A DNA stretch of 64,000 nucleotides from Raja brachyura (GCA_963514005.1 OY740791.1:51832001-51896000), one strand, 5' to 3'. Counted from the first letter of the stretch, positions 587-64,000 are shown. Notes: generated from the sequence alone by a model not told the origin. Numbers and translations are program-made.

Positions 587-856
587 CGTTCACCTTAAGA
601 TAGATTGAATTGGTCAGCTTGAGGCTGTTTCGATGAAACAATCCACATGTCCATTTCCTTCTCACCGTCTGAGCTCTTGGAATAATCAACTGCAAAGACC
701 ACACTTTCTCCCTTGAATCCTTTAAAAATTTGTCTCCCACAATTTTGTCATCACTGTTGATCCAAGTGAGTCTCATTGATTCAGCAACACCAGACACAGA
801 GCAGGTCAGGGTAACTTTGTCTCCCTCAGTCACTGCATCAGATGGTTCAGATGTAA
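587..856 (-). CDS. Gene A Ig domain D8 exon (C2-like, WxC motif; repeat of D4)
   Basis: 270 bp, phase 1-1, CAG/GTAAGT; EGDKVTLTCSVS..LTW..KWTCGLF. Confidence 0.88.
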
Positions 857-1641
857 CTGTGGAAACAAGAACATCATTGGGGATTTTGAACAGCAGCCAG
901 AGTTTCTACTCTATTGATTTCTTCATCAATCCCCTGATATCCCTACCACTGACCTAAAGGACAATTCATATTGTTTAGAAACTCTGTGTTATTGTTTACT
1001 ACAGTGAACAGCAAAATACACAACTCAAATGTTGAGGGGTGATCTCCAGTAAAAAGATCAATCTGTGTAAAGGGGTTTCCATGGATGGTCAATGCTGAGT
1101 CCCAGAAGGTGAATGAAAACACTTAATAATGTAAATGGTTACATTTATATTGTGCAACTTGAGTTTCCACAATCAATGACACCATCTCAAAAACACTGCA
1201 CAATAAACAGCTGCTGCCCACAGCACTACCCAGGTCCACTGTGCTGGAGCCAAACCCTTCCCCACACTGACACATTCCAATGGCAGGATGCCACCCAGAG
1301 TTTCCTGTAAATGACACATGATCCTGAATATACCCTCATTGGATCTTCATTGGGGTTTATTTCTTTCTACGATGGACCCATTTCCAGCGGGTGAATCATC
1401 TTCACATTATTGCCCTTAAATATGAAAAGGAAAATGCTTTAATGCCATTTGCTGGCTGATTGTACCATTTCATGATTAATGTTGTGTTGAGTAAAATGCA
1501 AATAAATATCTGGAATTCTGGAGATGAATCAATTATTTAAAAGATGAGAATATTTGGAGTAATTTGCACAGAAATTCAACGCATTCAAAGTGGGACACTA
1601 TTCAAACGAATCATAAACACTGGCAGCATTCAGTCTTCTAC

Positions 1642-1980
1642 CTGTAACTGTGATTAGTTCAATGGTCACATATTTATTTGATCCCATGAAACATGTGTAA
1701 ACTCCAGCATCTGCAAATCGCACGGGGACAATCCTCACATGGAAATCCTTGCCATTGACATTTCGCTCTATGTTTTCCAGTCGATTACCAAAGTAGCTCC
1801 TGTTGACATGTATCTGCTCAGACCTGTGAGAAGAAGCTATTTCTTTCTCTTGATTCTGGAAAAGTTGTGAACTCCAAGTCCATTTGGTTTCACTGAGCTC
1901 AGGAGAAGCTTCACAGATCAAGTTGAGTTCACTGTAATCTGTGACTGAACGATAAACTGTGTACGTCTTGTTATGTAAAT
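1642..1980 (-). CDS. Gene A Ig domain D7 exon (V-set; repeat of D3)
   Basis: 339 bp, phase 1-1; LNLIC..WTW..VRIVPVRFADAGVYTC. Confidence 0.9.
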
Positions 1981-2489
1981 CTGCAAGAGAGGGACAGGAA
2001 ACAAAGAAATAGATTTCCACAGATGCTGAGATACAATGTTGTGAGTTTCCACAGAGACAATCCCCCGGCTCCGGGATGTGAGACGAGAGTGTCCTAGAAT
2101 GTCAGATCACTGAAGTGAGTGAAGAACAACACCTGACCCATGAGAATGGCTCAGAAAAGACCCAAATCATTGAACAGCTGTACTTCTATCTTTAATTAAC
2201 TTTTATTTGCCACCTCCATTCTATACAGAAGACTACTTGCTTCTCTGCATTGATGGATTTTATCCCCTTTGATTCATACAAGCAAAATTAAATAAATACC
2301 GTGGTTCTCCTGTGTGGCTCCATCAATCTTAGTGCCACCATTTTATATTTACCCATGTCCCAGGGTAAAGGCAATGCCCACATCCTGCAGTGAAAGTCCA
2401 CGGTGGAGACAGTGCTCACTGTACAATATGTGGAACAGTTTGATATCAGGAACTATTTAATACCTGCTGCAAGGCAGCTTTGGACTCAC

Positions 2490-2753
2490 CCTGATCCACT
2501 TCAACATTGATGTCTCCAGTGAGAACAATGGAGCCATTTTCTTGCACTTCCCATGTGTACAGATTGGGATTTCCTGCTCCAACGTGTTGGACCATCAGAT
2601 AGACGGTGTTATTCAGACAGATCTGATCAGTGTTGTTCCTCCTATCCTGCTGAGATGGTTTCCAGTGAAGACTGAAGGTATCAGGGAGTCTGGAGATGGT
2701 ACAGCTGAGGGTGATGTCACTGCCCATTACTGGCCTCGGTGAGTCTGTCTCAA
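2490..2753 (-). CDS. Gene A Ig domain D6 exon (C2-like; repeat of D2, F-strand Cys replaced by Trp)
   Basis: 264 bp, phase 1-1, CAG/GTGAGT; GSDITLSC..LHW..LYTWEV. Confidence 0.88.
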
Positions 2754-3196
2754 CTGTGGAAACAGACACATGATGTGTGGTTCAGTTCCCCACCAGCTTT
2801 CTGAACTGCTGTGGGCAGAATTGGCTTTTTTCTGCAAACAGGCAGTCGGCGAATGTTGAGCAGCCGTTCTCAGTCATGTCATCAGCACTTCCAGTTAATG
2901 ACCACCTGCCCCCCTTGTCTCCCACCTCTACCCGCTGCTCCCAAACAACATCATCCAAAAACATTGAGCAGATTCCACAGATATGTTCCCAGCACCAGCT
3001 TTGCCTGCGCCACCTCTCTCAATCCTCCCGTGGTCTCTGTGCTGTTGATGACTTGACTAGCAATGGCCTGGTGAAGCAAGGTCACTGTTGCTGACCTTGT
3101 GGAACCTGCAACTGAGTTTGGGCCCTCTCTGTGGCCAGGACTTCACTTTCCCTGACATTTGGTAATGGAGGTCAGTTTGTGGGAACACCTAATATA

Positions 3197-4801
3197 CAGT
3201 GGCTTGCAAAAGTTTTCACACCCCTTGAACTTTTCCACATTTTGTCATGTTACAACCACAAACATAAATTATTTTATTGGGATTTTATGTGATAGACCAA
3301 CACAAAGTGGCGCATAATTGTGAAGTGGAAGGAAAATGATCCATGGTTTTCAAATTTTTTACAAATAAAAAACTGAAAAGTGTGGCGTGCAAAAGCATTC
3401 AGCCCCCTTTACTCTGATACCCCTAAATAAAATCCAGTGCAACCGATTGCCTTCACAAGTCATCTAATTAGTAAATAGAGTCCACTTGTGTGTAATCTAA
3501 TCTCAGTATAAATACAGCTGTTTGGTGAAGGACTCAGAGGTTTGTTAGAGAACATTAGTGAACAAACAACATCATGAAGCCCAAGGAACACACCAGACAG
3601 GTCAGGGAAAAAGTTGTGGAGAAGTTTAAAGCAGGGTTAGGTTATAAAAAAATATCCCAAGCTTTGAACATCTCACGGAGCACTTTTCAATCCATCATCC
3701 AAAAATGGAAAGAGTATGGCACAACTGCAAACCTACCAAGACATGGCCATCCACCTAAACTGACAGGCCGGGCAAGGAGTGCATTGATCAGAGAAGCAGC
3801 CAAGAGGCCCATGGTAACTCTGGAGGAGCTGCAGAGATCCACAGCTCAGGTGGGAGAATCTGTCCACGGGACAACTATTAGCCGTGCACTCCACAAATCG
3901 GGCCTTTATGGAAGAGTGGCAAGAAGAAAGCCATTGTTGAACCAAATCAATAAGACGTCCCATTTGCCGTTTGCCACAAGCCATGTGGAGGACACAGCAA
4001 ACATGTGAAGGAAGGTGCTCTGGAGACCAAAATTGAAGTTTTTGGCCTAAATGCAAAACACTATGTGTGGCAGAAAGCTAACACTGCACATCACACTGAA
4101 TACACCATCCCCACTGTGAAACATGGTGGCGGCAGCATCATGCTGTGGGGATGCTTTTCTTCAGCAGGGCCAGGGAAGCTGGTCAGAGTTGATGGGAAGA
4201 TGGATGGAGCCAAATACAGGGCAATCTTGGAAGAAAACCTGTTAGAGTCTGCAAAAGTCTTGAGACTGGGTCGGAGGCTCAACTTCCAGCAGGACGACAA
4301 CCCTAAAGATACAGCCAAAGCTACAATGGAATAGTTAAGATCAAAGCATATTCATGTGTTGGAATGGCCCAGTCAGTCCAGGCCTAAATCCAATTGAGAA
4401 TCTCTGGCAAGACTTGAAAATTGCTGTTTTCAGACGCTCTCCATCCAATCTGACTGAGCTTGAGCTATTTTACAAAAACGAATGGGTACAAATTTCAGTC
4501 TCTAGATGTGCAAAGCTGGTAGAGACATACCACAAAAGACTTGCAGCTGTAATTGCAGCAAAATGTGGTTCTACAAAGTATTGACTCAGGGGGACTGAAT
4601 ACTTTTGCACGCCACACTTTCAGTTTTTTATTTGTAATAAAATTTGGAAACCATGTATCATTTTCCTTCCACTTCACAATTATGCACCACTCTGTGTTGG
4701 TCTATCACATAAAATCCCAATAAAATACATTTACGTTTGTGGTTGTGACGTGACAAAATGTGGAAAAGTTCAAGGGGTATGAAACCTTCTGCAAGCCACT
4801 G
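3197..4801 (+). mobile_element. Tc1/mariner DNA transposon, IR-DR type, full length but inactive
   Basis: TA on both flanks; TIRs of about 210 bp starting CAGTGGCTTGCA; transposase remnants at 3574-4584 with a stop at 4006-4008, a deletion in WSDETK and frameshifts. Confidence 0.95.
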
Positions 4802-4845
4802 TAAACGTAATGTTTACAACACTTTCTGCTCATTCGTTGACTTAC

Positions 4846-5190
4846 CTTTGATCCCAAATAGTTCCCACTCTCTCAGGATTTTCCCACTGGGCTGTGTCTG
4901 ATTCCAGGTGAACAGTCCCTCAAGTTGAAAGTTGGGCTTCCTGATCCTCAGATTAAGGGTACCCCAATCCGCAAACATAATCTGGGAAATGTTTGGTATT
5001 TGATTGTACTCGTCACTCCATTGTACGGCCCACCGCTGATCTTCTCTGTGAAAAGTGGCCAATCGCTTTGTGGTTTGTTGCCCTGAGTTTGGCCTCCATT
5101 CCCAGACAATGGGGCCATTTCCAGGACTGTCTGGTCCTTTCAACACATAGTTGCCTTCCTGGTGGAGAAAGTAAATGGAATCGCCACTTG
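4846..5190 (-). CDS. Gene A Ig domain D5 exon (V-like, cysteine-less; repeat of D1)
   Basis: 345 bp, phase 1-1, CAG/GTAAGT; IYFLHQEGNYVLKGPD..VWEW..LRIRKPNFQLEGLFTW. Confidence 0.88.
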
Positions 5191-5732
5191 CTGCCAGAAA
5201 AGCAAAACAAAGTTTACAATCAGACAACGATGTCAGTCTGATCTGTGTCATGAGGAACATTGTGGATAATTGTTTTTTAAATAGTGTGAGTTATAATTCA
5301 TAGAATCAAATAACATGGAAACAGGCCCCTGTCCCAACATCCATGGTGACCAGTTGGCACTCTTCCATATTTGTCTCATCTCTCATGGCCTATTACCGTC
5401 AATGCTTGTGTGATTTACCCAACACTTTTAATTACAACTATATTTTACAAGCAGTGAAGTACATGAAAGATTTCCATGGAACGGCTTCACTTTCCACAGC
5501 ATCATGAAGATGTAACAATCACACAATTAACATGGCACATGGAAAGGGAAGTTTCAATATTCACCCAGGGCCACGGAGTTATCCCACGGTCCATATTCCC
5601 AGGCACTGCACCACTGCAGATTCTCCCACACAGGCTATAAAGGAGGAGTGAGTGCTGGCAAATAGGACAATAATGTCACATCAAAATGTGACCAAAATTT
5701 TAAGTATGAAGAGCAAATCCTGAGTCACTTAC

Positions 5733-5993
5733 CACTGGGCTCCTGATAGTACGGGACAAAAAGCCGGGGCAGGTGTTGATGAAACAAACCACATCTCCAG
5801 TTCCCTCTGCCCCTCTCAACTTTCTGAATAACCAGACTCAGTGATTTCTCTTTCTCGGTCAGTGTCTTTTCTCCAACACTTTTGTCATCACCATTGATCC
5901 AAACCAGTCTCATTGACTCAGTGACGTGTGACACAGAGCAGGTCAGGGTGATGGTATCTCCCTCAGTCACCGCATCAGACGGTTCAGCTGTGA
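5733..5993 (-). CDS. Gene A Ig domain D4 exon (C2-like, WxC motif)
   Basis: 261 bp, phase 1-1; EGDTITLTCSVS..LVW..GNWRCGLF. Confidence 0.9.
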
Positions 5994-6071
5994 CTGTGGA
6001 AACAAGCAGGTTGTTTACATTTTAAACAATTAGTTCATTAGTGAAAACACTGGCAGCATTCTGTCTCCTAC

Positions 6072-6440
6072 CTTTCACTGTGATTAGATCAATGGTGAGC
6101 AATGGAGAACTTCCCTCATTGTTCACTAATGTGTCTGTTCCAAGAAAACATTTGTAACATCCGGCATCTTGAAACATAACGGGGACAACCCTCAAACTGA
6201 AATCCTTGCCATCGTAGGGTTTCACTGACTTCACCAGTCGATTCCTGAAATCGTCCCTTTTGACATTGATGGGCTGAGAGTATGTTGCTGATGCTATTAC
6301 TTGCTGCTGTTGTTGTTGAAGGCGACGTGATGTCCAGGTCATGACAGTATTGGAATCCCCATGAATGTTATAGCAAACCAGGTGAAGTTCACTGTGATCT
6401 GTGCTGGAGCGGTAAACTGTGTATTTCCTTTGATATAAAG
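6072..6440 (-). CDS. Gene A Ig domain D3 exon (V-set)
   Basis: 369 bp, phase 1-1; LHLVC..MTW..FSLRVVPVMFQDAGCYKC (DxGxYxC); 78-bp intron to D4. Confidence 0.9.
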
Positions 6441-7434
6441 CTGTATTGGAGAGACAGAGGATAACTCATTTCAGTATTACAGTTGCAACCACATTCTCAT
6501 AAATATTTGCGGTGTTTTGTTCAGCTGGTCAAGCTTCAAATGTAAATGAATTTTGCATCAACACTCATCAGATCTTAAACAAAACACAAACAACATTTCC
6601 TGCAAATTAGTAAATTGCAGTAAAGCTTGGATATTTCACAGACTGTCCGGGAATCTCCCGGGATGGAATGAAACCTCCCGGAGACTCCCGAGAGCGGACT
6701 GGGAGGTGAATCGCTCTGTCAGTCTGCAGGTGGTGGTGCAGGTTCAGGCTGCGGACAGAAGCAGCCCAGAGGATGCCTGCACTGGGACTGACCCGGACAG
6801 GTTGGCAGTTCAAGTGGGTCGGGTCTTCCCGTCCCATCATTCCCATTATTCCCATGATCCCTCTCCCATTCACACCCGTTGATTCCCTGCCCTTCCCTCT
6901 TCCCCGGGTCCTGCTCCCAGCCGAATGCTGATCTGAAGCCCGAGTCTGCAGCAGCTGGAATCACTTCAAACAGCAGCAGGACTCGGAGAGAAGGGTCAGT
7001 GAGGGGAGAGGGGACGGATTGTTGTTCAGTGCTGATGTGTGCACCGGGTCCACCAGTGTGAGTGTGAGCAGCAAGTGCTGGTGGTTGTCATGGTGACTAC
7101 ACTTTCTATCTGACACTTTGACGTGAGTCCTGTATCAGTATCTCAGTCTCAGATACTGGAGCATTGATGGCAAGTTAAACTGACAAAATACTTTACTGAA
7201 CAATAGTTACAGAAATACATCCTCACTCCTGTGCTGTGTGTCTGTCACACAGAGACAAGCAGGCAGCTGCTGCACACAGAGACTTTCTGGAAACTTCTCC
7301 CTGATCATTGCAGTATTTTATATACCGGAGCAGTTGCTTGTCTACAGTTCTTCATGGAGCGCACACATCATATTACAAGAAGCACCGTGATACAAGTGTC
7401 TACTTAATATCTAATGGGAGGTGTTTACACTTAC

Positions 7435-7704: not shown

Positions 7705-7961
7705 CTGTGAAAAACATATCAATGAGATTCAGGGTGAGTAGTGGTGTGTACAGTCCAATGACTGGGCTCAATCTCACCTCAGCTGAAAACCTAGACCCGC
7801 CCCTCATTCTTCTAAACTCCAGCAAGTCCAAGCCCAGAGCCACAAACACTCATCATACGTTAAACCAATCATCCCCTGGGGCATTTTCATAAACATTTGT
7901 TTTATTTTCATCACTTCAGACCCGCACTGCAATCTCTGCACCTTTGTGCTGGTTTGCTTTT

Positions 7962-8192: not shown

Positions 8193-11100
8193 ATTTTACT
8201 TCGGAGGAACGTGAGTGACCACGTGAAGAAGCCCCCCAGGTGCATGCACATCCTTACGTCAGATGCATGGCGCACCGAAGGGCTGGATAGCGCAATTCCA
8301 CCAGCGGTAAGTAATAAACCGGCAGGTAAGTGATTTTTAAACTTTCTGACTGGCTCAGGAGCCAGCGGGAGTATTTTCAAGATGGAGAAAGTTGTATAAA
8401 ATTCTGCCATCCGTAGAAGAGCTTTACTCGCGGGACCGCGGTTAGTACTCGCAGATCGGGTAGGGAGAAACGCCGGTTCCAACGCTAACTGCAGAACCGC
8501 CGGCTGCTCAACTGCCTCCATTAACTCCGGTGCCTCAGGGTGCTGTGGCCACTCCAGCAGGGAGAAAGGCTAAACAAAAGTCAGTCAGGCCTGTTTATTC
8601 TGACGAGTCTGACGAAGATGACTCCCCACCTTCCAACAAGAAGGTCTGGGGACGTCTAGACCAAATGGAACAGATGCTTCAAACTATGATGAACCATGAA
8701 GTGTTCCAATCGGGGTCGCATACTCCCAGGATTCCCCAAACAGCCTCAGGCAGAGGCCCATATGGCGAGGAGGACTTGAACGCCTATGAGTTCCAATGGG
8801 AATCATCCTCACCAGCACCTTGTTTAGGGCTGGTCGAGACCACCCTAGAGCAAGACTTGGGAGAGCCAGGGCAGGAGGATTCTGACCCTGAAGTTGGTGT
8901 CACTGCTTTTGTGCACACACCAAGACACATGAGCCATGCGCCAGGTGTCCCAGATGTGGCTAGAAATGTTGCCATTCTGGAGGGAACTGGTGAAGCAATG
9001 GAGGAAAATCTGGCTTGCAATATAAACTACATGGCCTCTCTAAACTACACGGATTCCATCATGGAACAGACGACAATGCGTTACCAGGTACCTGTTAACT
9101 GTGCGTCGCTCAAGGTGCCCACCGTGAACTCGGCTATCTGGGCATAAATGAGCGCATCGATGAGGGGGCAGCTCCGTTTCCAGAGAGTCCTCAAATTAGT
9201 GGGGGCAGGTATCACGGCTTTTGGGAAAATGGTCCAAGGGGCACCAATGTCGGGAACACAGCAGGATATGTTGGCCCTGCTGTGCAATGCCCATTTCGAG
9301 ATCAATTGTATCCGGAAGATTGCCATCAAACCAACGTTAAACCCACGCTTTGCAGCTCTTTTTAGGTCCTCTAATATTCAGGCACCAAATTTCTTATTCG
9401 GCGAAGACCTGCTGAAACAGGTCAAAGACCTAGAGGAAGAGACCAAAACCATTGGTCTCATGAAAACCTACATACCCTCGGCAGGGATACCACCTCGCAG
9501 GTCTTTTTCAACCAGACGGGCGTCAGATGCTGGAGCAGGCCCAAGTAGAGTGTTACCAGTTGGACGGCATCCATATCCACCTGCGTACTCCAACAACTAC
9601 CCCAACATGGCCAGGAGAGTGAGAAGCTCAAGATCGACTATGGAGGTACGGGTAACTGATTCAGTCCAGGATAAATCCTCTGAGGAACAACCTCCGGTTG
9701 GGGGTAGGTTTCAATTGTTTTATGATGAATGGTGCTGCATAATATCTGATCTGTTTATACTGGACAGCGTCTCAGGGTCTCGAATTGAGTTTATGTCAGG
9801 AATAAATCCACCTGCACAAAATATGCCTAGCCGGGTATTGTTTTTTTCTGGACCAGAAACTCTGCAGGTGGATGATGAAATTGGGGTTTTATTCCAAAAA
9901 GGGGTAATTGAGAAGATGGTATATCATCCTCAACAATTTGTGTCCAATATATTCCCCAGACAGAAAAAAGATGGTGGGTGTGGAGTCATTCTAGACCTAA
10001 CCCAGTGGTAATTGAGAAGACGGTATACCATCCTCATCAATTTGTATCCAATATATTCCCCAGGCAGAAAAAAGATGGTGGGTGTCGAGTCATTCTGGAC
10101 TTAAACCAGTTAAATTCCTATGTCCAGTATAGGCATTTTAAAATAGATACTTTCAGTACTGCTAAACAGCTGTTATCAAAAGGTTGTTATATGGCAACCA
10201 TTGATCTGAAAGATGCATATTATTCAGTACCAATTCATCATCAGTACCGTAGATACTTGAAATTTAGTTGGATGTGACATCTGTGGCAACTTAAAGCGTT
10301 TCCCAATGGGTTAACCTCAGCTCCTAGGTTGTTCACAAAATTGTTAAAGCCAGTTCTGGTGCAACTTTGTGCCCAGATTCACATTGTGATGGCTTATTCA
10401 GATGATATATTAATTACAAGCAACACTCAGGAAGCAGCTGAGGAGTTGGTTTCAGCAACCAAACACCTGTTTGAGAGGTTAGGTTTTCTCATCCTTCCAA
10501 CAAAATCCAAGCTAGTACCATCCCAAAAAATTAACTATTTGGGGTTTGTCGTTGATTCAGTTGATGTGTCAGTGACTTTGCCTACGGCCAAGACTGTTGA
10601 AATCGTGGAGGTCTGTAGCAGTCTCATAGAAAAGCAACAACCCTCCATCCGGAAAGTAGCCAGTGTTATTGCCTCCTATTTAGGGCAATTTTCAGAACAA
10701 CAATCTATCGGGTCTCACCTGTTAGTGTCCCGATTCATGAGAGGTATCTTTAACAAAAACCCTCCTAAGCCTAGATATACAGAAATCTGGGTTGTCAGTA
10801 TAGTTCTCACACTGCTTTGGCAATGGGCTCCAATCACATCACTATCTTTTCAGAAGTTAACATTTCAAGTGGTTATGCTCATGGTGCTAGTATCAGCGCA
10901 CTGGGTTCAAACATTGCAAAAGTTACGGCTGGATAGCAGGTATTCTTCTGTAGATAACATGACGTTTTATGTATATGATTTAATCAAACAAAGCAGGCCA
11001 GGTATGGCCGGAATGAAAGTCAGCTTTAAAGCATACCCCGTTGACCAAAGGCTATGTGTAGTTACGCACCCGAGTCTATATATCAAGGTAACTAAGAGTC

Positions 11101-11914
11101 TCAGAGGCTCTGAGACAGCAATGCTTATCAGCCATAAAAAAAACTAATAAAAAGGTGTCAGTACAAACTATTTCTAGTTAAAACAGGTTTTGGATTGTGC
11201 TGGAGTAGACACTCGTGTGTTTAAATCTCACTCCACCAGAGCGGCATCAACATCTGCAGCTAAGGCACAGGACGTTCCTCTAGATCAAATCCTTGGGGCC
11301 GCAGGATGGTCTACGGAGGCGACCTTCTCCAAGTTTTATGACAAACCTGTCCTGACAGAGCAAGGTTTTGTGCATGCTGTTTTGGGTTCCGTTTTATTTA
11401 TTTTCTAAATTTCATTTGTAATTTCCCACTGGGATAGAGAGGTTATTACAGTTTTTGTTTATTATTAAAAAATGTTTATTGAAAAATTTGAACAATGTTC
11501 AATACCTTATTTGTTCACTCCTGTGTCAACTGAAGCAGTGTGTCGTATGGAATGGATCTATGGCATGAAATCACAGAGCTTTGAAATCTTCACGTAGTCA
11601 CTCACGTGACTCCGAAGTAAAATAGTAAGATTAAACGAGAACTTGCCAGTTTGAAGTTTGATCTTTATTTTGTGAGGAGTTACGATGAGGGATTACGTGC
11701 CCTCCGCTCCCGGCCCTCATAATCGCAAAGATCATCTGGTAGTTCTAGTCTTCTGAGTCTTACTATATCACTTTGACTATAGTTACAGTGTTTTCATGCC
11801 GCTGCTTTGAGGTATGATGCCTGGCGGGGCTTCTTCACGTAATCCTTCATCATAACTCCTCATAAAATAAAGATCAAACTTCAAACTGGTAAGTTCTCAT
11901 TTAATCTTACTATT
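8193..11914 (+). mobile_element. DIRS1-like tyrosine-recombinase retrotransposon copy 1 (internally deleted, degenerate)
   Basis: gag-like 8530-9600; RT (IDLKDAYYSV, YSDD) 9640-10670; YR C-terminal half (HSTRAAS..AGW..FY) to 11408; internal complementary region at about 11587-11699 matching both termini; ATT at both ends. Confidence 0.92.
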
Positions 11915-15112: not shown

Positions 15113-15305
15113 GGCCACAAAAGGCTGGAGTAACTCAGCAGAACAGGCAACATTTCTGGACAGAAGGAATGGGTGACTTGTTGAGACGATTCTTCAAACC
15201 TGAAGACAGAGTCTGAAGAGTCACGACCCGAAATGCCACCCATTCCATCTCTCCAGAGATGCTGCCTGTCCCACTGAGTCACTACAGCATGTTGTGTCTA
15301 CCTTT
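15113..15305. repeat. Penelope-derived palindromic short repeat (related copies at about 470-570, 20300-20420 and 46735-46930)
   Basis: GCTGGAGTAACTCAGC..CAGGCA(G)CAT(C)TCTGGA arm with its inverted copy around CTGAAGA..CCCGAAA. Confidence 0.55.
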
Positions 15306-15351
15306 GCTGTCAGTGCTAGTTTTCTCAACTTCCAGAGCCTCTCGGCATAAG

Positions 15352-16172
15352 TGGGGGAGAGAGAGAGGAGAGAGAGAGGGGGGAGAGGGACAACAAGGGA
15401 GAGAGAGAAAAAGGGAGAGAAAGAGAGGATAGAGAAGGGATAGAGAGGGGGGAGAGAGAGAAGGGGCAGAGAGTAGGGTGAGAGAGAGGGGGGAGAGAGA
15501 GAAGAGGGAGAGAGAGAGAGAGAAGAGGGAGGGAGGGAGAGAGAGAAGGGGGAGAGGGAGAAGGGGAGAGAGATAGAAGGGGGGGAGAGAGAAGGGGAAG
15601 AGAGAAGGGGAGAGAGGAGAGAGGGGAGGGGGGAGAGGTGGAGAGAAGGGAGAGAGAGGAGGAGAGGAGGGAGAGAGAGAGGAGGGAGAGAGAGAGGAGG
15701 GAGAGAGAGAAGGGAGAGAGGGAAGGGTAAGAGAGAGGGGTGAGAGAGGGGTGAGAGAGAGAGGATGGGAGAGAAGTGGGAGAGGGGGGAGAGAGAGGGG
15801 TGAGAGAGAGGAGAGGGAGAGGTAGGGGGATATAAAGGAGGAGGAGAGAGAATAGGAGAGAGAGAAGGAGAGAGAGAAGGAGAGAGAGAAGGGGAGAGAG
15901 AAGGGGGAGAGAGATAAAGGGGGAGAGAGATAAAGGGGGGAGAGAGATAAGGAGGAGAGAAAGACAGAAGGGGAGAGAGGAGGGGGAGGGAGGAGGGAGA
16001 GAGGAGGTGGAGAGAGGGGGGAAGAGAGGGGGGAGAGAGGGGGGGAGAGAGGGGGGGAGAGAGGGGGGGAGAGAGGGACCGAGAGGGGGAGAGAGGGAGA
16101 AGGGAGAGAGAAGGGAGAGAGAGAGAGAGCGGGAGAGAGGAGAGGGGGAGAGAGAAGAGGGGAGAGAGAAGT
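15352..16172 (+). repeat. Polypurine (GA-rich) low-complexity tract, about 820 bp
   Basis: Almost only G and A on the plus strand; source of spurious L/S/P-rich ORFs. Confidence 0.95.
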
Positions 16173-17229
16173 GGTAGACGGGGGTGTGGGGGTCATTTTC
16201 CCACACAAGCCATAGGTGACTGGGCAATCTGAACGCAAGCACCAAGTTGTAAGCGGCCGATGGTGCGCATCCCTCGGGACAGCCTCCATTCTCCCATGGC
16301 CACCCTCCGCAGGCTGTGGGTCGGGTGGAGCGGAGGTGTGGGGTAATGTTCATCTCTCCACAGTGATGTGATGGACGCGGGGGACTGGGCCAATCGTTGA
16401 CAAGTCCCGCCCCCAGCAAAGTCATGTCCGTTATTTGACTTTTTTGTTGAGGGGCATTTCCCAGTGCCAGTGTTTGGGAATATCAGAGTATTCCTGCTCG
16501 TTGGCTTGTAGGTGATGCCGCCTTTCGGGTAGGTAGCATTTCGGCAGAGCAACCATTCGGCGAGTTTGCTTTTAGGCGATGCAGCCTTTCGGTGAGTCGC
16601 TTTTAGGCGTCCCGCCCTATCGGTTAGTTTGCATTTAGGCGTCCCATCCTTCGGTTAGTTGCGTTTCGGCTTCTTTTACATTTGGTTATTCGGCTTCCAC
16701 TTCTTTGATTCGGCTTCTGTCCATCGGCGCCACGTCCGGGTACCGGGGGACTTTACCAAGTGCCTTACTAAAATTACTGTAGACAATGCCATGTAAAATT
16801 CATGCCTACTGTCTTTAATTAATCTGTTTTGTTCCAAGTGGGAGTCAATTTTATACCAAAGAATATTTTCCAATTGTTTCCTACCATTGTCATGTGAATC
16901 ACAGTTTTTTGCTGAATTCTCTACCCCATTTTAAACAAATAAACCATTTTAACTCCCATTCCCATACTGATCTTTCAGTCCTTAGCCTCCTCCTTTGCCA
17001 GAGTGAGGCAACACACAAACTAAAGAAACCACACTTCATATTTCTCTTGGCTATCTGACAACTTAATGATATGGACATTGAATTCTTGACTTTCAGAAAA
17101 CAAATCCCCAAACAATCCACCCCACCTTTTTACTGACATTTTATTTAATTTCATTTTGTTTTCCCTTTTCCCTTGCTCCTCTCATCCCTGGAGATATCTG
17201 ATACCTCACCTACATCCCCTAACTCCAGT

Positions 17230-20240: not shown

Positions 20241-23200
20241 TTGAATGTGGAGACACTGAAAGTATCTGAAGATGTTTTTATGTTGTTTTAGATTTGTATA
20301 AAACAAGGAACTGCAGATTCTGGTTTACCAAGAAAAGGCACAAAATAATGGAGTAACTCAGCATGTCAGGTAGCATCCCTGGAGAACATGGCTAGGTGAT
20401 GTTTTGGGTTAGGACCGTTTTCTTCAAAAATCATTTTGTAAATTGTTTTTATTCTGCCTAAAGTTTATTTTTAAATTTTAAAAGAAATGTGAGGTTAGAA
20501 GGGCACAAGGTGTAATTACTGTGTTTTCCAAGCTCATTCAGAAGATAATATATATCTGACAGATCCCAAGTACAATGAGGGATTCTGCCTTTCTCCATAT
20601 CACATTCAGGACCGGAAGCAAAATTCAGAGCAATGGTTAAGGCTGCATTAAGTGCTATCATGCAATTCAACCCCAATGATTCGTCTATTTTGAGCTCTGG
20701 GCTGTTTAACTTCTTGTTTTTTTCTCAACTAAGGGGAGTAGGCTGCATCCGTGGCTGACAAGAGAAGTTAGGGATTTTATCACTTAAAATCGTATGCTAT
20801 TCTTCCTAAAATAGTGTTATGATATTATTAAAAATCAACAGTAGTAGTCATAATTATCAAGCATTTAAATTTAACACCCCACCCCTATATAAAAATCCCT
20901 TAAGGCAAATATGGAGCTGGAACCATTAACATCTTTTTTTTTTAACAACTGAAGTCGGTAGATTAATAGCCATGGTAGTGTGGCTTACACTAACTACACT
21001 AAACATAGCTGTAGTCACCCTTTTCTTTCTGCACATCACTAACACCATTAACATTTTTTATTTTTATTTTGTTTCTTATATTTTATATAATGTACTATAT
21101 TATTTCAGTTATGGTTGGCATTATACAGTTGGTTTGAAGAGATATGTATGTAAGATAAAGTTACAAGTATTAAAATTCATCGATCTGATGCATGGGTATG
21201 AGGTTTGGATGGATATGCTGAGACATCTACTCCATTATAATCCACCTTAATAACAAAATGCAAGATATTAATATGAAAACTGGGGGTGATGGAATCACCT
21301 TCTGCAGTTGGAATATAAAGGGAATTAATGAACCAATTAAAAGAGGTAAGGTTTTATATCATTTAAATAGACTTAAAACAGACATAGTCTTCCTTCAAGA
21401 GACACACCTTAAAAAGGATGCGCAACATGGACTAACAGCAAAATGGATTTCTAAAGTACATCATTCTTCATTTACACATAAGTCTAGAGGGGTTGCAATA
21501 CTTATTCGTAAAGGCATACCATTTAAACATAGCTCAATAATAGAAGATACTGAGGGTAGATACATAATAGTTACGGGTGAATTATATTCAAAGAAAGTCG
21601 TTCTTATGAACATATATGGACCTAACTTTGATAATCCGCTGTTTTTTAAGAAAATATTTAATACTATTCCTATATCTACACAACATAATCTAATAATTGG
21701 GGGTGATTTAAACTGTACTTTAGATAATTATCTAGATAGATCATCAACTAAAAGGAAAGCTATATCTAAATCAAGCGAATTCATAAATTCTTTTATTAAT
21801 ACTGCAAATGTTAATGATGTCTGGAGAACTGATAATCCCTCTGGTCGGGAATATTCATTTTATTCTCCTGTATTCGGAACCTATTCAAGAATAGATTATT
21901 TTTTAATAGACTCAAAGTTAATTCCATTTGCGTATGACTCAAAATACCATAATATTATTATTTCAGATCATGCTCCATTAACCATTAACATTTAAGATAA
22001 AATTAAAGGGTATAACTAATAAATACTCTCAATGGAGACTCAACCCTCAAATATTAAATGATAAGGCTTGTTATGATCATCTGGTAAAACAGATTAAATT
22101 TTTTTTTGAGACTAATGACAAACCTGGAATTTCTTCGTCACTTCTTTGGGACACATTTAAAGCCTTTATGCGTGGTGCTATAATATCTGCGCAAGGACAC
22201 CTTAATAAGGAAAACCGAAAGACTCAACAAATGTTGGAAAATGAAATAAAGCAATTAGATATTGAAAATGCAATATCTCCATCTAAGGTGATATATAATA
22301 AAATTACAATATTAAAATATAAGCTAAATAAAATATACTCAAATCATGTTATTAAACTTTTTCAACAAACTAAAAAAGTACATTTTGAATTCGGGGATAA
22401 ACCACAAAAACGCCAGCTTAGAAAATTAGATGAGGAAAAAATGATATATAAAATCAGATCTGAAAAAAGGAGAAATATTAACTTTACCAAAAGATATTAA
22501 TGACAGATTTCTGTATTACTATCAAAAACTTTACTCAACTAAACTGACTGGACAATCAGATGGAATGGAAACATTCCTACATGAATATCATATTAAAGGT
22601 TTAGATCAAGAAGGCAGAGACTTGTTAGATGCTGAAATATCAGTAAAATACATTGAGGAATCAATCAGATCGTTGAAAAATGGAAAAGCTGCTGGCCCCG
22701 ATGGCCTAAGTGTTGAATTTTATAAGAAGTTTCATGACTTGATTTCCCCATGTTTACAAACAATATATAAATATGCTTACGAACAAGGAAAGTTACCAGA
22801 AACTCTAAATGTGTCTACAATCACACTAATTCCTAAAGTAGATAAGGATCTAGAAGATCCTGGGTCATATAGAGCAATTGCTCATCTAAATACTGATCAA
22901 AAAATATTAACTAAAATTTTATCTCAAAGGTTAAGTTTAGTGATTAATAAATTAATACATCGTGATCAAACAGGCTTTATTCCCAAACGTTATTCCACTT
23001 ATAACTTGAGACGTCTATTCAATATCATATATTCAAAAAGAATTAATGATATTGAATTAGCTGTCATTTCATTAGATGCGGAAAAAGCATTCGACCAGGT
23101 TGAATGGCCTTACTTATTCAAGATAATGCAGAATTTTCAACTGGGGGATAGATTTTGTAAATGGGTTAAAATTTTATACTCTAACCAAACAGCAAGAATA

Positions 23201-56896: not shown

Positions 56897-57235
56897 CTGT
56901 AACTGTGATTAGATCAATGGTGACATATTTATTTGATCCCATGAAACATGTGTAAACTCCAGCATCTGCAAATCGCACGGGGACAATCCTCACACGGACA
57001 TTCGTGCCATTCACATTTCCCTCTGTGGTTACCAGTCGATTCCCAAAGTTACTCGTGTCGACATGGATCGGCTCAGACCTGTGAGAAGAAGCTATTTCCT
57101 TCACTTGATTCTGGAAATGTTGTGAATGCCAAGTCCATTTAGTTTCACTGAGCTCTGGAGAAGCTTCACAAATCAAGTTGAGTTCACTGTGATCTGTGAC
57201 TGAGCGATAAACTTTGTACGTCTTGTTGTGTAAAT
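56897..57235 (-). CDS. Gene B Ig D7 exon (V-set)
   Basis: 339 bp, phase 1-1; 18 of 113 aa differ from gene A D7; DAGVYTC. Confidence 0.9.
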
Positions 57236-58031
57236 CTGCAAGAGAGGGACAGGGAACAAAGAATTAGATTTCCACAGATAGTAAGATACAGATAATCTGA
57301 ATTTCCACAGGGACAATCCCCGGCTCTGGGATGTCAGCTGGGAGGGCCGCACTGAGACAGGGAAGTAGGCTGGGAGCTGCAATATATATATTGTTCAAAC
57401 GCAGGGCTGTGCAACAAAATCCATCTTCCCCAGCCACACGCCCAGCAAAGTGATACTGGTGGACTGGAGATAATAAAAAATCTGTTACCCAGTCTCAGAA
57501 ATCGATTACAGTGAAATGTTTATCACACATTGAACTGGGCATCATTGTACCTCTCAGGTTGTTATACAAGGTGAGTCCTACAGAGAGAGGGACATGAAGG
57601 AACATTATTTGGACGATGGGAGCGCTCCTGAATGTCAGACAATAAGATCACTGGAGTGAGTGACAAACAACACCCAACCCAAGTAAATGATTCCGCCAAC
57701 AACTGAATCTTGGTACAGCTGCACATTATCTCTAATAAGTTCATATTTCCCTCCTCTATTCTAGACAGAAGACTACTTGCTTCTCTCCATTGATGAATGT
57801 TATCCCCTTTGATTCATGCATGCTAATTGAAATTAATCCCTTGGTTCTCCTGTGTGGCTCCATCAATCATAGTGCCACCATTTTATATTTACACCATGTC
57901 CCAGGCGTAAAGGCAATGCCCACATCCTGCAGTGAAAGACCACGATGGAGACAGTGCTCACTGTACAATATGTGGAACAGTTTGATATCAGGAACTATTT
58001 AATCCCTGCCACAAGGCAGCTTTGGACTCAC

Positions 58032-58304
58032 CCTGATCCACTTCAACGTTGATGTCTCCAGTGAGAACAATGGAGCCATTTTCCTGCGCTTCCCATGTGT
58101 ACAGATCGGGATTTCCTGCTCCAACGTGTTGGACCATCAGATAGACGATGTTATTCAGACGGATCTGATCAGTGTTGTTCTTCCTGTTCTGCTGAGACGA
58201 GCCTCTTGGTTTCCAGTGAAGACTGACGGTATCTACGAGTCTGGAGATGGTACAGCTGAGGGTCATGTCACTGCCCATTACTGGCCTCGGTGAGTCTCCC
58301 TCAA
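58032..58304 (-). CDS. Gene B Ig D6 exon (C2-like, F-strand Trp)
   Basis: 273 bp, phase 1-1; 3 aa longer than gene A D6; LYTWEA. Confidence 0.88.
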
Positions 58305-59548
58305 CTGTGGAAACAGACACATGACGTGTGGTTCAGTTTTCACAACCAGATTTCTGAACTACTGGGGGCAAAATTATCTTTTTCCTGCAAACAGACAGTC
58401 GGCCGAATGCTGAGCAGCCGTGCTCGGTGATGGCATCAACACTTCTAGGTAGTGACCACCTGTCCCCCTCGGCCCCCTAGTCTCGCACATCTACCCGCTG
58501 CTGCCGAACAACATCATCAAAAGAGATTGAGCAGCTTCCACAGCTATGTTCCCAGCATCAGCTCTGCCTCCCCCCACCTCACGCAACCCTCACATGGTCT
58601 CTGTGCTGTCAATGACTTGGCTAACAATGGCCTGATAAAGCAAGGTCACTGCTGCTGACCTTGTGGAAGCTGCTACAGAGGTTCGCCTTATCTGTGGGTA
58701 GGATTTCACTTTCCCAGTGTCAGGGCCAGTTTATGTGAATACCTGACCTCAACATGGTCATCATATTGGTTGAGCTGACAATCACACTCGGTGACAGAAA
58801 ATGAAGAAGGGAAAACTGAAAGTTAATTTTAATATTTTAATATTTTAACAATTTACAGAATCCAATATGTTGGAACACAGATCTTAGATATTGATGGAGC
58901 TAAAATATAAGCATTTTGACAACATGCTCCAGGAGCAACACCTCATCTTTGGTCTGGGCAAGTTGCTACCTTCTATTGTCAATATGGAACTCCCATCTCC
59001 ATAAGGATTAATACCGTCTGCCATCATTGTTTTCCGTTTCCTCTCTGTGTAGAGAGTGTGTCGCAGTCGGCCAGAACCACATCATCAACAAATTGCTCAG
59101 CTACAGTGGCTTGATCTTATCCCACCTGCCACATGTCTTCTCTCCATCAGGAGAAGTTCCCTGGTTTCACCACATTTCAATGCTGCCTGGGCTGCCGTCT
59201 TTCTCAAGTCTTTCCCAGAAATCTTGACTGTTTCTCCTGACTTGCTGACATTTTCCAGCCATTTCTGTTATTGTATTAGAAAGGGTGGTAGGGTGGAGGT
59301 GTGGGGGTAACAGAGCAGTAAAATGGCTAAACATGTCATTAAACATTTTGATGTTTCAACATCTGTCAGTCTTGGCCGTTTCCAAATTGTGGGGATATTC
59401 ATCAATTCATTAACTCTGCAGCATTGTTTGTACAAAACTCATCAAATAACTGACCCAATTCCAACATTCTGTCACAAATTTGTGGAAAACGTTAGAGAAA
59501 AACACATTTATGTTCCTTGTGCACCTTTCTGTTCCTTGTCCAACATAC

Positions 59549-59887
59549 CTTTGATCCCAAATAGTTCCCACTGTCTCAGGATTTTCCCACCAGGCTGTGT
59601 CTGATTCCAGGTGAACAGTCCTGCAACTTGAAAGGTGGGCTTCCTGATCCTCAGATCAAGGGTACCCCAGTCTGCATGCATCCTCTGGGAAAGGCCTGGT
59701 ATTTGATTGTACTCATCACTCCATTGTACGGCCCACCGCTGATCTTCTCTATGAAAAGTGGCCAATCGCTTTGTGGTTTGTTGCCCTGAGTGTGACCTCC
59801 ATTCCAAGTTAATGGCGCCAATTCCAGGACTGTCTGGTCCTTTCAGTACAAAATAGCCTTCCTGGTGGAAAAAGTAAATAGTAGTCC
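59549..59887 (-). CDS. Gene B Ig D5 exon (V-like, cysteine-less)
   Basis: 339 bp, phase 1-1, CAG/GTATGT; close paralog of 4846-5190. Confidence 0.88.
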
Positions 59888-60228
59888 CTGCCAGAAAAGG
59901 AAAATAGAGTTTTAAATTCGGACGATAACTTCTCAGTATGATCTGTGTCCCAATGAATACTGTGAAATTGTTTTCTTTAGAAAGGTTGTTAGTTATAGTT
60001 AATAGAATCATAGAATCTTCTAGCATTGAAACAGGCCCTCTAACACAACCCAGCGACGTCGACCTGTGCACTCTTTCATATTTGTCACATCTGTTTGGTC
60101 AATTGTCTGCAATGCCAATGTGATTCAAGTGTGATTTGCCCAGCAGTTTTAAATAAATCTATATTTTACAACAAGCAGTGAAGTACATCCAGAGAACAGC
60201 TTAGCATTGCGTCATCAATGTAACGTAA

Positions 60229-61817
60229 CGGTACCCGGACGTGGCGCCGACAGACAAGAAGCCGAAGCTAAGAAGTCGAAGCCAAAGAAGCAAAGGGAAA
60301 CGAGGCGGAAATGCTAATAAACCGAAAGAGTTCGAAGACGAAACGATTACTAACCGAAAGGATGGGACGCCTAAATGCAAACTAACCGAAAGGGCGGGAC
60401 GCCTAAAATCCAACGAACCGAAAATCTGCATTGCCTAAAAGCAATGGCCGCTCTGGCAAAACGCCACCTACCAGAAAGGCGGCATCGCCTACAGGCCAAA
60501 GGACCGACTGCCGCTCAACAGAAACGTCCAATAACGGACATGACGTTATGGGGGGGGGGGGGGGGGGGGTACTTGTCAGGGATTGGTCCAGACCCCCGCA
60601 TCCATCACATCACTGTGAAGGTATGGGTCACACAGTGACACAGCTGGGTCACTGTGTGACAGCAGTCTCACCGGCTGGGTCACTGTGTGACACCAGTCTC
60701 ACCGGCTGGGTCTCAGTACAAAACGCCACCCATTCCGTCTCTCCAGAGATGCTGCCTGTTTTGTGCGTGGGAGCTTGGGTGCGTTCCGCAATCACCGAGA
60801 CAGTAATAAATAAAACATCTGTCCCCACACCCTGTGTGGGTGACGGGGTCCGGGGGTTGGAGGGGAGAAATCACCCTGGTGAGGAGATTGGGGTCCGATG
60901 GCGGTGCATCGCGGTCAGTGACTGAGGGACGTTCCCGCGGGTGGAGACGGAGGAGAGAGAAGGGGGAGAGAAGTGGAGAGAGAGAAGGGGGCGAGAGAGA
61001 AGGGGGGGGAGAGAGAAAGGAGGGAGAGAGAATGGAGAGAGGGGGGTGAGGGAGAGAGGAGGGGAAAAGAGGAGGAGAGAGAGAAGAGTGGAGAGAGAGG
61101 AGGAGAAAGAGTAGAGGGGAGAGAGAGGAGAGAGAAGAGGGGAGAGAGAGGAAAGAGAAGAGGGGAGAGAGAGGAGGGGAGAGAAGGGAGAGAGAGATGG
61201 GGAGAGAGAGATGGGGAGAGAGAGATGGGGAGAGAGGGAAGGGGGAGACGGGAGCATGGGGTTCATTTTCCCACACAAGCCATAGGTGACTGGGCAATCT
61301 AAACCCAAACACCAAGTTGAAAGCAGACAAAGGTGCGCATAGCTCAGGACAGCCCTCACTCTCCCGTGGCCACCGTCCGCGCGGGCTGTGGGTCGGGTGG
61401 AGTGGAGGTTTGGGACAATGTTCATCCCTCAACAGTGATGTGATGGACGCGGGGGTCTGGACCAATTGCTGACAAGCCCCGCCCCCCGACAACGTCATGT
61501 GCGTTATTGGACATTTCTGTTGTGCTGCAGTCGGTCCTTTGATCTGTAGGCGACGCCGCCTTTCAGGTAGGTGGCGTTTCCACAGAGTGGCCATTCGGTA
61601 AGTTTGCTTTTAGGCTATGCAGCTCTTCTGTTCGTTAGTTTTATGCGTCCCGCCCTTTCGGTTAATTTGAATTTAGGCGTCCCATCTTTTCGGTTAGTAG
61701 GCGTTTTCTCTTCGTAATCTTTCGGCTTATTGGCGTTTCGGCCTCATTTCCATTCGGTTCTTTGGCTTCGACTTCTTTGGTTCGGCCTCTCGTCCGTCGG
61801 CGCCACGTCCACACACG
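60229..61817. mobile_element. Foldback-like non-autonomous DNA element copy 2, with long imperfect inverted arms and GA core
   Basis: About 390-bp imperfect inverted repeats (60237-60620 vs 61430-61810); GA tract 60950-61250; AATGTAAC on both flanks; absent from the paralogous gene A intron. Confidence 0.75.
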
Positions 61818-61924
61818 AATGTAACAATACATCACAGTTAAGCTAGAAGTTTTATCATTTGACAAGCACATGAGATTGGCATCAGAGGAGAGCAGAAATG
61901 GTAGACAGTTACCACAAGCAATGA

Positions 61925-62233
61925 TGTTTGGTTTAGTTTTGTTTACGTTAGTTTGAGATGCAGTGTGGAAACACGCCTTTGTCCCACCAGGCGCATGATG
62001 ACCATTGATCACCCCACACAATAATTCTATCCTACACACAAGAGACAATTTACAGAAGTCGCTTAACCTACAATTATGCAAATCATTGCAATGTGGGAGG
62101 AAACCGGAGGATCTGGTGAAAAGCCCCACTATCACAGGGAGAGCATACAAACTCCATACAGACAGCACCCGTGGTCTGGATCGAACCCGCGTCTCTGGCA
62201 CTTTTCAGCAGCAATGCTACCGCTGCACCAGCC
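61925..62233 (-). mobile_element. tRNA-derived V-SINE (HE1-like)
   Basis: A box TGGTGCAGCGG, B box GGTTCGATCC, V-domain TGTATGGAGTTTGTATGCTCTCCC..CTCCGGTTTCCTCCCACA, CR1-like 3' tail. Confidence 0.8.
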
Positions 62234-63650
62234 CTTGTGAATGTGTGAATTCAGATTATTGAACATATGGATTGGGGGAAGAGTTTGAGAGGAGCTCAGA
62301 CAAATGATGGTGTGGGGAGATTGTATGGACATTTCATAGTCTCCCAGTTTATTCAAACATTCAATGAGAAAAGTGCAGGAAGGGCTTGGTAACCCAACAT
62401 TGACCAATGAAGAAGGGGCAGGGGAGGGCAGGTTTATTTGCAAACAACCAGCAGCCATGTCCATTCATCGATGGCAACAGGAGACAGAAGGTGATGACAG
62501 AGAGTTGTTTTTGCACCTGGATGCCTGTTACTGACGGTGACTAATGGTGTCCCACAAGGATTGGTCCTGGGACCTTGTTGTAACTAATCTACACAAATGT
62601 CTTAGCAGTGGATTTGGGAGGCACGATGAGTGAAGTTGTTAATAGTGTGGACAGTGGTCTTATTCTGCAGAGAGATGTCAATGTGTTGGTGGAATGTGCT
62701 GGAAAATGAAAGATGGATCTTAATCCAGACATTTGTGAGGTGATGTGCCTCCCCTTTATTCTAAGGCTATGGCCCCTGGTTTTGGACATATACCATGAAT
62801 TACAAGGTCTGACAAAGTATTGAGAAACAGAGGGACATTGGATTATCCATTGATCCTTGAACGTGAAAACACAAGTAGATAATGCGGTTGGAAAGGCATA
62901 TGGGATAGTGTGTTCATCAGTCAGGACATTGATCACAGAAGTATCGAAGTTATGCGGCAGATGTGTAAACTTTGGTCAGGACTCAGCTGGAGTACTGTAT
63001 GCAGTCTGGTCACCAAATGACGGGAAGAATGTGATAGCACTGGAGAAGGTATAGAGGAGATGGACAGGATGCTACCTGGGTTGGAGCTAATGAGTTCTGA
63101 GAAGAGATTAGAGAAGCTACATTTATTCCCCCTGGAGTGGAGGTCTCTGAGGGGACATTATTGACATGTATAACTGGTTAACATCGGTGAAATGGGTAAG
63201 TGGCCCATTCCAATGCTGCATGATTCTATGTTTGCACAGTTTGTAACACCACAGGTTGCAGGACTGCTTATGTAAACAGCATTCCCCATCCAGGTATCCT
63301 GAACACTCCAGTGTCCAGCTGTGAGATGGTCTCTGTGTTCAGTATTGGTCAGTATGGGCATGATAGACTGTGGGCAGTGATTGTGGCAGTGGAATTGGTC
63401 CAGGGACAGGACTTAATGCTTGTCACAGCTCTGTCACTTTCCCAAGAGCATCAGTGACACATAGAAAGGTGAAGTTTCAATATTCACCCAGGGGCACGGT
63501 TATCCCACGGTCCATATCCCCAGGCACTGCACCACAGCAGAGCCTCACACATGGGCCGTGAAGGAAGAGTGAATATTGGCAAATAGTGCAATGTGACATC
63601 AAAATGTGACCCTGATTCTAAGTATGAAGAGCAAACCTTGAGTCACTTAC

Positions 63651-63911
63651 CATTGGGCTCCTTATAGTAAGGGACAAAAAGCCGGGGCAGGCCTTGATGA
63701 AACAAACCACATCTCCAGCTCCCTCTGCTTCTATCAACATTCTGAATAACCAGACTCAGTGATTTCTCTTCCACAGTCATTGTTTTTTCTCCAACATTTT
63801 TGCCATCACCATCGATCCAAACCAGTCTCATTGACTTGGTAACGTGAGACACAGAGCAGGTCAGGGTAACGTTGTCTCCCTCAGTCACTGCATCAGACGG
63901 CTCAGCGGTGA
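63651..63911 (-). CDS. Gene B Ig D4 exon (C2-like, WxC)
   Basis: 261 bp, phase 1-1; 16 of 87 aa differ from gene A D4; GSWRCGLF. Confidence 0.9.
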
Positions 63912-63989
63912 CTGTGGAAACAAGCAGGTTGTTTACACCTTTAATAATTAATTCATCAGTAAAACCAGTGGCCGCATTCTGTCTCCTAC

Positions 63990-64000
63990 CTTTCACTGTG
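63990..64000 (-). CDS. Gene B Ig D3 exon, 3' end only (continues beyond the window)
   Basis: ..ACAGTGAAAG|GTAGGAG identical to the gene A D3 donor; same 78-bp intron length. Confidence 0.75.

Follow-up and report, generated by a model that had tools for sequence, protein, structure and literature searches.

A 64,000-nucleotide stretch of the Raja brachyura genome (GCA_963514005.1 OY740791.1:51832001-51896000; hereafter the window), considered here from position 587 to position 64,000, carries two genes, A and B, that encode receptors of the immunoglobulin superfamily (IgSF). In our best explanation, which we consider probable though well short of certain, these are tandem, same-strand members of a large, unnamed IgSF receptor family in which a module with the domain architecture of CD4 and LAG-3 has been doubled, and whose members are probably paired inhibitory and activating receptors. 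The family proteins are predicted to be type I membrane receptors, and the hosts are cartilaginous and early-branching ray-finned fishes. Each module opens with a cysteine-less V-like domain, continues with a C2 and a V domain and closes with a second C2 domain bearing a WxC motif; it is predicted to form two rigid V+C2 rods with one beta-strand running across each border. The family is real and widely distributed, and appears to be undescribed.

Gene A lies on the minus strand from 19639 to 587 and comprises a leader and eight exons that each encode a single Ig domain (D1 to D8). Exon borders were set by locating a phase-1 acceptor and donor around each open segment, and the leader was placed by mapping homologues, whose N-termini align there at 65-86% identity. 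The leader exon (19639-19552, 88 nt) begins with an ATG, encodes a hydrophobic signal-like peptide and ends at a phase-1 GT donor. It is followed on the same strand by D1 (13769-13428), D2 (7704-7435; 88-90% identity to skate homologues), D3 (6440-6072), D4 (5993-5733), D5 (5190-4846), D6 (2753-2490), D7 (1980-1642) and D8 (856-587), which ends at a donor at 587; the transmembrane (TM) helix and tail lie beyond the window start. AG...GT borders were found on all nine exons, every Ig exon is phase 1-1, and the joined sequence from leader to D8 is 2548 nt long with zero in-frame stops. The length is the one given in an earlier note on this DNA, which had described a leader and eight phase-1 exons splicing into one open frame. 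That note had also seen internal paralogy between the two halves of the gene, and tblastn places it far above chance: D1 and D5 share 41% amino acid identity (E 3e-23), D2 and D6 57% (5e-28), D3 and D7 45% (5e-28), and D4 and D8 58% (1e-26).

Gene B is a second gene on the same strand, about 55-58 kb from gene A, of which D4 to D8, a TM exon and three tail exons fall in the window. Its 3' part (D8, TM and tail) was mapped with an Amblyraja radiata homologue as guide. Of D3 only the final bases are present (63990-64000, cut by the window end, with AAG followed by the donor GTAGGA at 63990). D4 (63911-63651), D5 (59887-59549), D6 (58304-58032) and D7 (57235-56897) are 81%, 81-82%, 86% and 84% identical to their gene A counterparts, an overall range of 81-86%; D8 (55791-55519) shares just 53% with gene A D8 and 79-80% with skate homologues P0086 and P0128. 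The TM exon (52295-52182) encodes an uncharged helix followed by RKRR and matches P0128. The tail is encoded by exons at 46686-46624, with the immunoreceptor tyrosine-based inhibitory motif (ITIM) IHYGSI and 91% identity to the A. radiata homologue; 46199-46156, mapped via the homologue; and 46022-45954, the last coding exon, with a second ITIM, VIYAQI, a stop codon and 90% identity to the homologue. The nine gene B exons have intact splice sites and fitting phases, are in frame with no internal stop and end in this stop codon. The ratio of nonsynonymous to synonymous substitution rates (dN/dS) between genes A and B over D4-D7 is 0.53, so the two copies are not in neutral decay. The earlier claim that gene B repeats D3 to D8 some 55 kb away stands for D4-D8, with D3 reduced to its last ~10 nt inside the window. 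The claim that its tail has ITIMs in place of an Lck-binding CxC motif was borne out: no cysteine, Cx(C/H), (F/Y)xxL(D/E), ITAM (immunoreceptor tyrosine-based activation motif) or YxN was found in the gene B tail.

By Pfam, D3 and D7 are V-set domains (4.5e-07 and 5e-07 in gene A, with D7 of gene B also V-set), and D2, D4, D6 and D8 match generic Ig families (ig, Ig_3). D1 and D5 lack both Ig cysteines and the Pfam scan returned nothing for them; they may be called V-like by their predicted fold only. With X for this cysteine-less V-like type (D1 being of an N-terminal subtype and D5, in both genes, of an internal one), and Ca and Cb for the first and second C2 domain of each module, Pfam and local hidden Markov model (HMM) mapping give the order X-Ca-V-Cb, twice in gene A. 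The doubled V-C2-V-C2 order proposed earlier is upheld as V-like, C2, V, C2, with the reservation that the first V has neither cysteines nor a Pfam match. The F-strand WxC motif, previously taken as a mark of the C2 domains, is confined to Cb, where it appears as NWRC (gene A D4), KWTC (gene A D8) and SWRC (gene B D4) and is conserved family-wide. The F strand of Ca reads YVC in D2 and YTW in D6, and gene B D8 is a variant Cb with NHTC for WxC and a C-strand Trp-to-Cys change, both common to skate homologues. In D6 of both genes (2491-2751 and 58033-58302, minus strand) the B-strand cysteine is kept and the F-strand cysteine is replaced by Trp, leaving an apparently unpaired cysteine. The D3-D4 intron is 78 nt long in both genes (6071-5994 in gene A and 63989-63912 in gene B, minus strand); that of gene B is open and in frame, such that its retention would add 26 residues, and that of gene A has a stop.

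A profile built from the three X domains of the window was scored against 1.84 billion proteins and matched 40, 22 of them below 1e-10; essentially all of those looked up are fish proteins labeled 'uncharacterized' or 'hypothetical'. Their sources are catshark, horn shark, sawshark, epaulette shark, manta, sawfish, numbfish, skates, elephant shark, sturgeon and eel. Searching with 16 four-domain members as a profile brought in more than 120 further elasmobranch relatives, many of ~1000 aa, and a bichir/sturgeon profile matched eight-domain elasmobranch (ray) proteins at ~1e-150. The nearest relatives are in the skates Leucoraja, Amblyraja and Rhinoraja, at 85-90% identity per exon, which marks the source as a skate-like batoid and not a shark. 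The family spans Chondrichthyes (sharks, rays, skates and chimaera), bichir, sturgeon, paddlefish and eel, and its description as lineage-specific in the earlier note does not hold. The same note's expectation of a multigene family annotated only as uncharacterized agrees with the database labels, apart from the automatic names obscurin-like, CD276 homolog and CEACAM5-like. Literature searches by locus names, by obscurin-like and nurse shark, and by LAG-3 family and cartilaginous fishes found no paper describing the family, and the main text of Venkatesh 2014 does not mention obscurin.

For a domain census, 178 fetched proteins were mapped using HMMs made from the domains in the window itself. 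The order X-Ca-V-Cb was present in 55 of them and the exact order X-Ca-V-Cb-X-Ca-V-Cb in 31, and members have one, two or about four modules; the long members include a catshark protein of 1710 aa, which has almost four modules, and a 2139-aa eel protein. An eight-domain nurse shark member, AGQ17915.1, was deposited as 'obscurin-like' and is probably cDNA-derived, since its accession comes right after the one that PMC10768021 cites for nurse shark CD8beta. Rays and skates also have two-domain forms, either X-Ca-TM (P0013, P0157, P0160) or V-Cb-TM (P0155, P0158, P0164). These half-module members, each with its own TM and tail, recall the two-domain CD4-2 of teleosts. Among the domains, D1 is conserved least between orthologues and Ca most. 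In a tree of X domains, internal (D5-type) and N-terminal (D1-type) sequences, gene A D1 among the latter, form separate clades, each with a Shimodaira-Hasegawa-like approximate likelihood ratio test support of 92 (quick search), and the internal type has much shorter branches. Both clades hold sharks and rays, so the module doubling would predate the shark/ray split and is, to judge from the sequences, old.

The tails of the homologues are of two kinds, both found in elasmobranchs (sharks and rays) and in sturgeon. The first has an uncharged TM helix and a long tail with HLYSN, I(H/Q)Y(A/G)S(I/L) and V(I/V)Y(A/E)Q(I/V), and gene B is of this kind; the second has a TM helix with a central lysine (e.g., SGYLLVKLGIAVGL) and a short tail. 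Sturgeon has ITIM-tailed and YxN-tailed members besides the lysine-TM forms, and relatives in bichir, sturgeon and paddlefish have a YxN motif at their ends, either IYEN(C/V) or IYDNV. None of the tails inspected, those of the bichir and sturgeon models included, showed an ITAM. A lysine in the TM helix with a short tail is the usual sign of pairing with an ITAM adaptor. Closely related ectodomains come with an ITIM tail, as in gene B and many homologues, or with a lysine TM and a short tail, and on this basis the family probably consists of paired inhibitory and activating receptors. Engagement of the gene B ectodomain would most likely lead its ITIMs to recruit SH2-domain phosphatases and dampen cell activation, to go by the motifs only, and lysine-TM members would pair with an ITAM adaptor. 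The fast-evolving N-terminal domain would be the likely ligand-binding end.

The hallmarks of CD4 and LAG-3 are a V-C2-V-C2 order, WxC in D2 and D4, and a V-domain G strand that runs into the A strand of the following C2 domain, the last described as rare and typical of CD4/LAG-3; a conserved genomic region and tails with Cx(C/H) (CD4) or (F/Y)xxL(D/E) (LAG-3) complete the list (PMC10768021). Structure comparisons used an AlphaFold2 (AF2) model of the four-domain shark homologue P0012 (predicted local distance difference test [pLDDT] 80, predicted template modeling score 0.72) in place of the window's own protein; a second AF2 model, made for a two-domain X-Ca member, was poor (pLDDT 55) and did not enter the fold search. 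In the P0012 model, strands run unbroken over both the X-to-C2 border and the V-to-C2 border (132-146 and 336-349). CD4 or LAG-3 accounted for seven of the ten top Foldseek matches of this model in the PDB, led by CD4 7t0r_A (5.7e-17), LAG-3 8dgg_A and CD4 1wio_A. In VIA-align, Z was 15.9-17.6 for four-domain CD4, with 316-327 residues aligned, and 14.0 for the next family, and the model aligned domain for domain with CD4 residues 1-363. The V-Cb rod superposes on rat CD4 D3D4 with a root-mean-square deviation (rmsd) of 2.6 A (170 of 177 residues) and on human CD4 D1D2 with one of 3.5 A (175 of 178 residues). At the sequence level, the 16-sequence family profile returned four LAG-3 entries first among PDB proteins (6e-13 to 6e-11), ahead of pIgR, the next family, at 2.3e-9 (fifth match), and the profile's V(F-G)+Cb part is where both LAG-3 rods align, WxC included. 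The nearest named ESM Atlas clusters of a shark and a bichir member include g6f-like and CD4, as leads without alignments.

Several observations weigh against kinship with CD4/LAG-3, or against other parts of our best explanation. WxC is missing from the first C2 domain of each module. Superpositions of all four domains on CD4 give an rmsd of 12-22 A, a large value attributed to differing hinge angles, and with one representative per PDB cluster VIA-align ties single V domains of many families at Z ~14. A batoid V-Cb profile places B7-H3 (3.4e-9) and MXRA8 above LAG-3 (7.5e-7) in the PDB, an X-Ca profile matched no solved structure family there, and a profile of the window's Cb domains only gave weak, non-specific matches (PD-1 3e-4, CD4 9e-4). 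The window exons matched no CD4-specific Pfam family. The assignment as paired receptors is a prediction from motifs only. No transcript of the locus was seen among the sequencing runs that contain it, which are all of DNA; their contigs run through the introns without any splice joint of the gene. The annotated Leucoraja erinacea protein XP_055498699.1 (P0119, 509 aa) runs from the leader to D4 and then reads into intron sequence.

The link to CD4/LAG-3 is supported mainly by structure, with weaker sequence support, and common ancestry is likely, perhaps with teleost G6f-like as well. We do not count the genes described here as strict CD4/LAG-3 members, and they are not orthologues, since their tails differ from the CD4 and LAG-3 types. 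The earlier note's "related but not orthologous" is thus firm in its second half, on the tails, and likely in its first, with CD4/LAG-3 as the top PDB structures and LAG-3 leading one profile search and B7-H3 another. Its use of a single-exon D1 to set the family apart fails, as D1 of shark CD4 and LAG-3 is likewise not split by an intron (Takizawa et al., PMC10768021). In catshark, CD4 lies on chromosome 16 at 86.75 Mb (PMC10768021 supplement), and the record that carries family members is 244.3 Mb long. A chromosome ranked sixteenth would hardly reach such a length, which makes linkage improbable, and these members are probably on another chromosome than CD4.

Two other assignments of the family deserve serious weight, though we think neither likely. 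By the first, this is an independent IgSF family without special kinship to CD4/LAG-3; its V-C2 pairs would stand closer to those of B7 (CD276/PD-L1), nectin/CAR/JAM or SLAM/CD2, and its CD4-like layout would be convergent or generic to V-C2 arrays. It is favored by the B7-H3 match at the top of the batoid V-Cb search, by the alignment of PD-L1 with the family profile over the whole V-C pair (7.7e-8), by the NCBI label 'CD276 antigen homolog' on some two-domain members, by the tie among V domains near Z 14 and the empty search for CD4-specific Pfam families, and by the X domain, which taken alone fits SLAMF6 (NTB-A), CD48 and NITR11 best (Z 12.5-14.0). The 4Ig form of B7-H3 has its V-C pair duplicated in tandem, and B7-H3 is not known to have a cysteine-less V domain or a WxC motif. 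Against this assignment, the 16-sequence profile is led by LAG-3, and Foldseek and VIA-align by CD4/LAG-3, with no B7-H3 or PD-L1 among the matches listed; only CD4 D1D2 and D3D4 combine a low rmsd on the V-Cb rod (2.6-3.5 A) with a fit along almost the full chain; WxC is conserved in Cb across the family; and the P0012 model has the border-crossing strands described as rare and CD4/LAG-3-typical (PMC10768021). CEACAM, SLAM/CD2 and Siglec/CD22 were also considered and set aside. CEACAM1 matched the family profile at 4.8e-8 over just a 24-residue stretch, the likeness to SLAM/CD2 is limited to the structure of the X domain, and Siglec/CD22, at 1e-6 with the family profile, is at the generic Ig level.

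By the second, which we hold to be about as doubtful and which overlaps with our best explanation, the family is a much expanded cartilaginous and early ray-finned counterpart of teleost G6f-like. Ohashi et al. reportedly found in 2010 that G6f-like is similar to CD4/LAG-3. In the ESM Atlas, 'g6f-like' is among the top named neighbors of shark P0012 (0.97) and ranks first by both features and structure for bichir P0173, although these rows are leads without alignments. G6f-like, a thrombocyte collagen receptor, combines four Ig-like domains and a single TM with a tail that has YxN and an ITAM encoded across two exons (PMC3528668), and YxN tail ends occur in the bichir, sturgeon and paddlefish relatives, which are joined to the eight-domain elasmobranch proteins by the bony-fish profile. 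However, searches with sturgeon P0024 and the bony-fish profile reached no teleost G6f-like, CD4 or LAG-3, and the tails inspected are without ITAM. Gene B differs from G6f-like in its eight-domain-type exons and its ITIMs, and has no ITAM or YxN.

It is improbable that gene A is something other than one eight-domain gene, with D1-D4 forming a four-domain, possibly secreted product and D5-D8 belonging to another transcript or unused. The L. erinacea protein P0119 is the observation in its favor: its C-terminal read-through matches window positions 5693-5538 on the minus strand, at the start of the gene A D4-D5 intron, with 71% amino acid identity. A four-domain gene A isoform, possibly secreted, is possible, as is an annotation artifact in P0119. 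The D4-D5 intron is 542 nt long and has many stops throughout all three frames, the phases fit, and the D4-D5 junction peptide agrees with that of annotated eight-domain homologues of many species ('EPSGSG.SIYFFHQEG' in the homologues, 'EPS-A-SGDSIYFLHQEG' predicted here). The eight-domain order is exact in the 31 fetched proteins noted above, and D5-D8 are free of stops, with the dN/dS against gene B already given.

We think it very improbable that the family corresponds to the MDIRs (modular domain immune-type receptors), which Cannon et al. reportedly described in 2006 as a modular activating and inhibitory IgSF multigene family of clearnose skate with several domain subtypes: the fifth-ranked pIgR match of the family profile speaks for it, but no Raja eglanteria or MDIR-named protein was among the family-search matches from a collection that included NCBI nr, though skates were closest, and the domains here are without the extra cysteines of the CD300 type. 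MDIR domains are reported to be CD300/TREM/pIgR-like (PMC3031540), a comparison made by description only.

The window contains no genes besides the two, only transposons. A Tc1/Sleeping Beauty-type transposon at 3195-4770 (open reading frames [ORFs] at 3574-4334, plus strand; Pfam HTH_Tnp_Tc3_2 and HTH_SB) sits in the gene A D5-D6 intron, and a DIRS-like fragment with an RVT_1 match (8530-11147, plus strand) in the gene A D1-D2 intron. A DIRS-like retroelement with a tyrosine recombinase (Phage_integrase) match occupies 24889-28803 on the minus strand, and a long interspersed nuclear element at 21258-23617 on the plus strand, with ORFs for an apurinic endonuclease and for a reverse transcriptase, lies in an AT-rich block (GC 0.32). 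In the DNA runs, coverage is very deep only at the Tc1-type element and at a repeat at 470-669, and the summed contig depth of 1e5-1e6 marks the Tc1-type element as extremely high-copy. In both gene regions, long CT-rich low-complexity blocks (15282-16425 and 60713-61594, minus strand) produce spurious 'SLSPL...' ORFs that are 290-370 aa in length. A GC-rich minisatellite made of repeated PGFRELRCSSGGLGFGSCGAPAAAW-like units spans 33984-34846; it has several open frames on each strand, and the window's strongest GC-skew excursion falls at the same place.

The origin of CD4 and LAG-3, two molecules central to T cells, is unclear, and cartilaginous fishes were formerly believed to have no CD4. 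We suggest tentatively, as a possibility somewhat short of an even chance, that the family is a third, undescribed branch of CD4/LAG-3(/G6f-like) that predates the split of cartilaginous and bony fishes and expanded into modular paired receptors of two to about sixteen domains. Were this so, it would show a use of the ancestral CD4/LAG-3 module before its tie to major histocompatibility complex class II. For comparative immunology, the family would supply out-group material for the CD4/LAG-3/G6f lineage and would add a candidate innate-type regulatory receptor system of sharks, rays and sturgeons.

Compared with known systems, the proposed receptors share with paired families (CEACAM1-type, LILR/KIR, SIRP, NITR and MDIR) their multigene clusters, ITIM-tailed members beside short-tailed members with a basic TM, and a fast-evolving membrane-distal domain; with CEACAM and SLAM they also share an N-terminal V-like domain without a disulfide. 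The domain types and order of the paired families are different, and their sequence links to the genes here are no better than generic Ig. B7-H3 and other B7 proteins have in common with the family the tandem V-C pair, the top PDB sequence match of the batoid V-Cb profile and a name given to some family members, but B7 proteins are ligands without ITIM tails. With G6f-like the family shares the four-Ig unit, the single TM and tail tyrosine motifs, including YxN in the bony-fish relatives; G6f-like signals by its own ITAM, whereas the genes here have ITIMs or a TM lysine and occur in many copies. The likeness to CD4/LAG-3 extends to the V-C2-V-C2 order, an exon per domain with phase-1 borders, the unsplit D1 of shark CD4 and LAG-3, predicted rigid V+C2 rods with a border-crossing strand, WxC in the membrane-proximal C2 domain and one V-like domain per module without a disulfide. 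In contrast to CD4 and LAG-3, the module is doubled here, and occurs once or about four times in relatives; the cysteine-less V is the first domain here and the third there; the first C2 domain has YxC in place of WxC and there is no small-residue hinge after D2; and the tails have ITIMs, or the TM a lysine, instead of Cx(C/H) or FxxL(D/E). CD4 and LAG-3 are single genes, whereas the receptors described here belong to a large multigene family.

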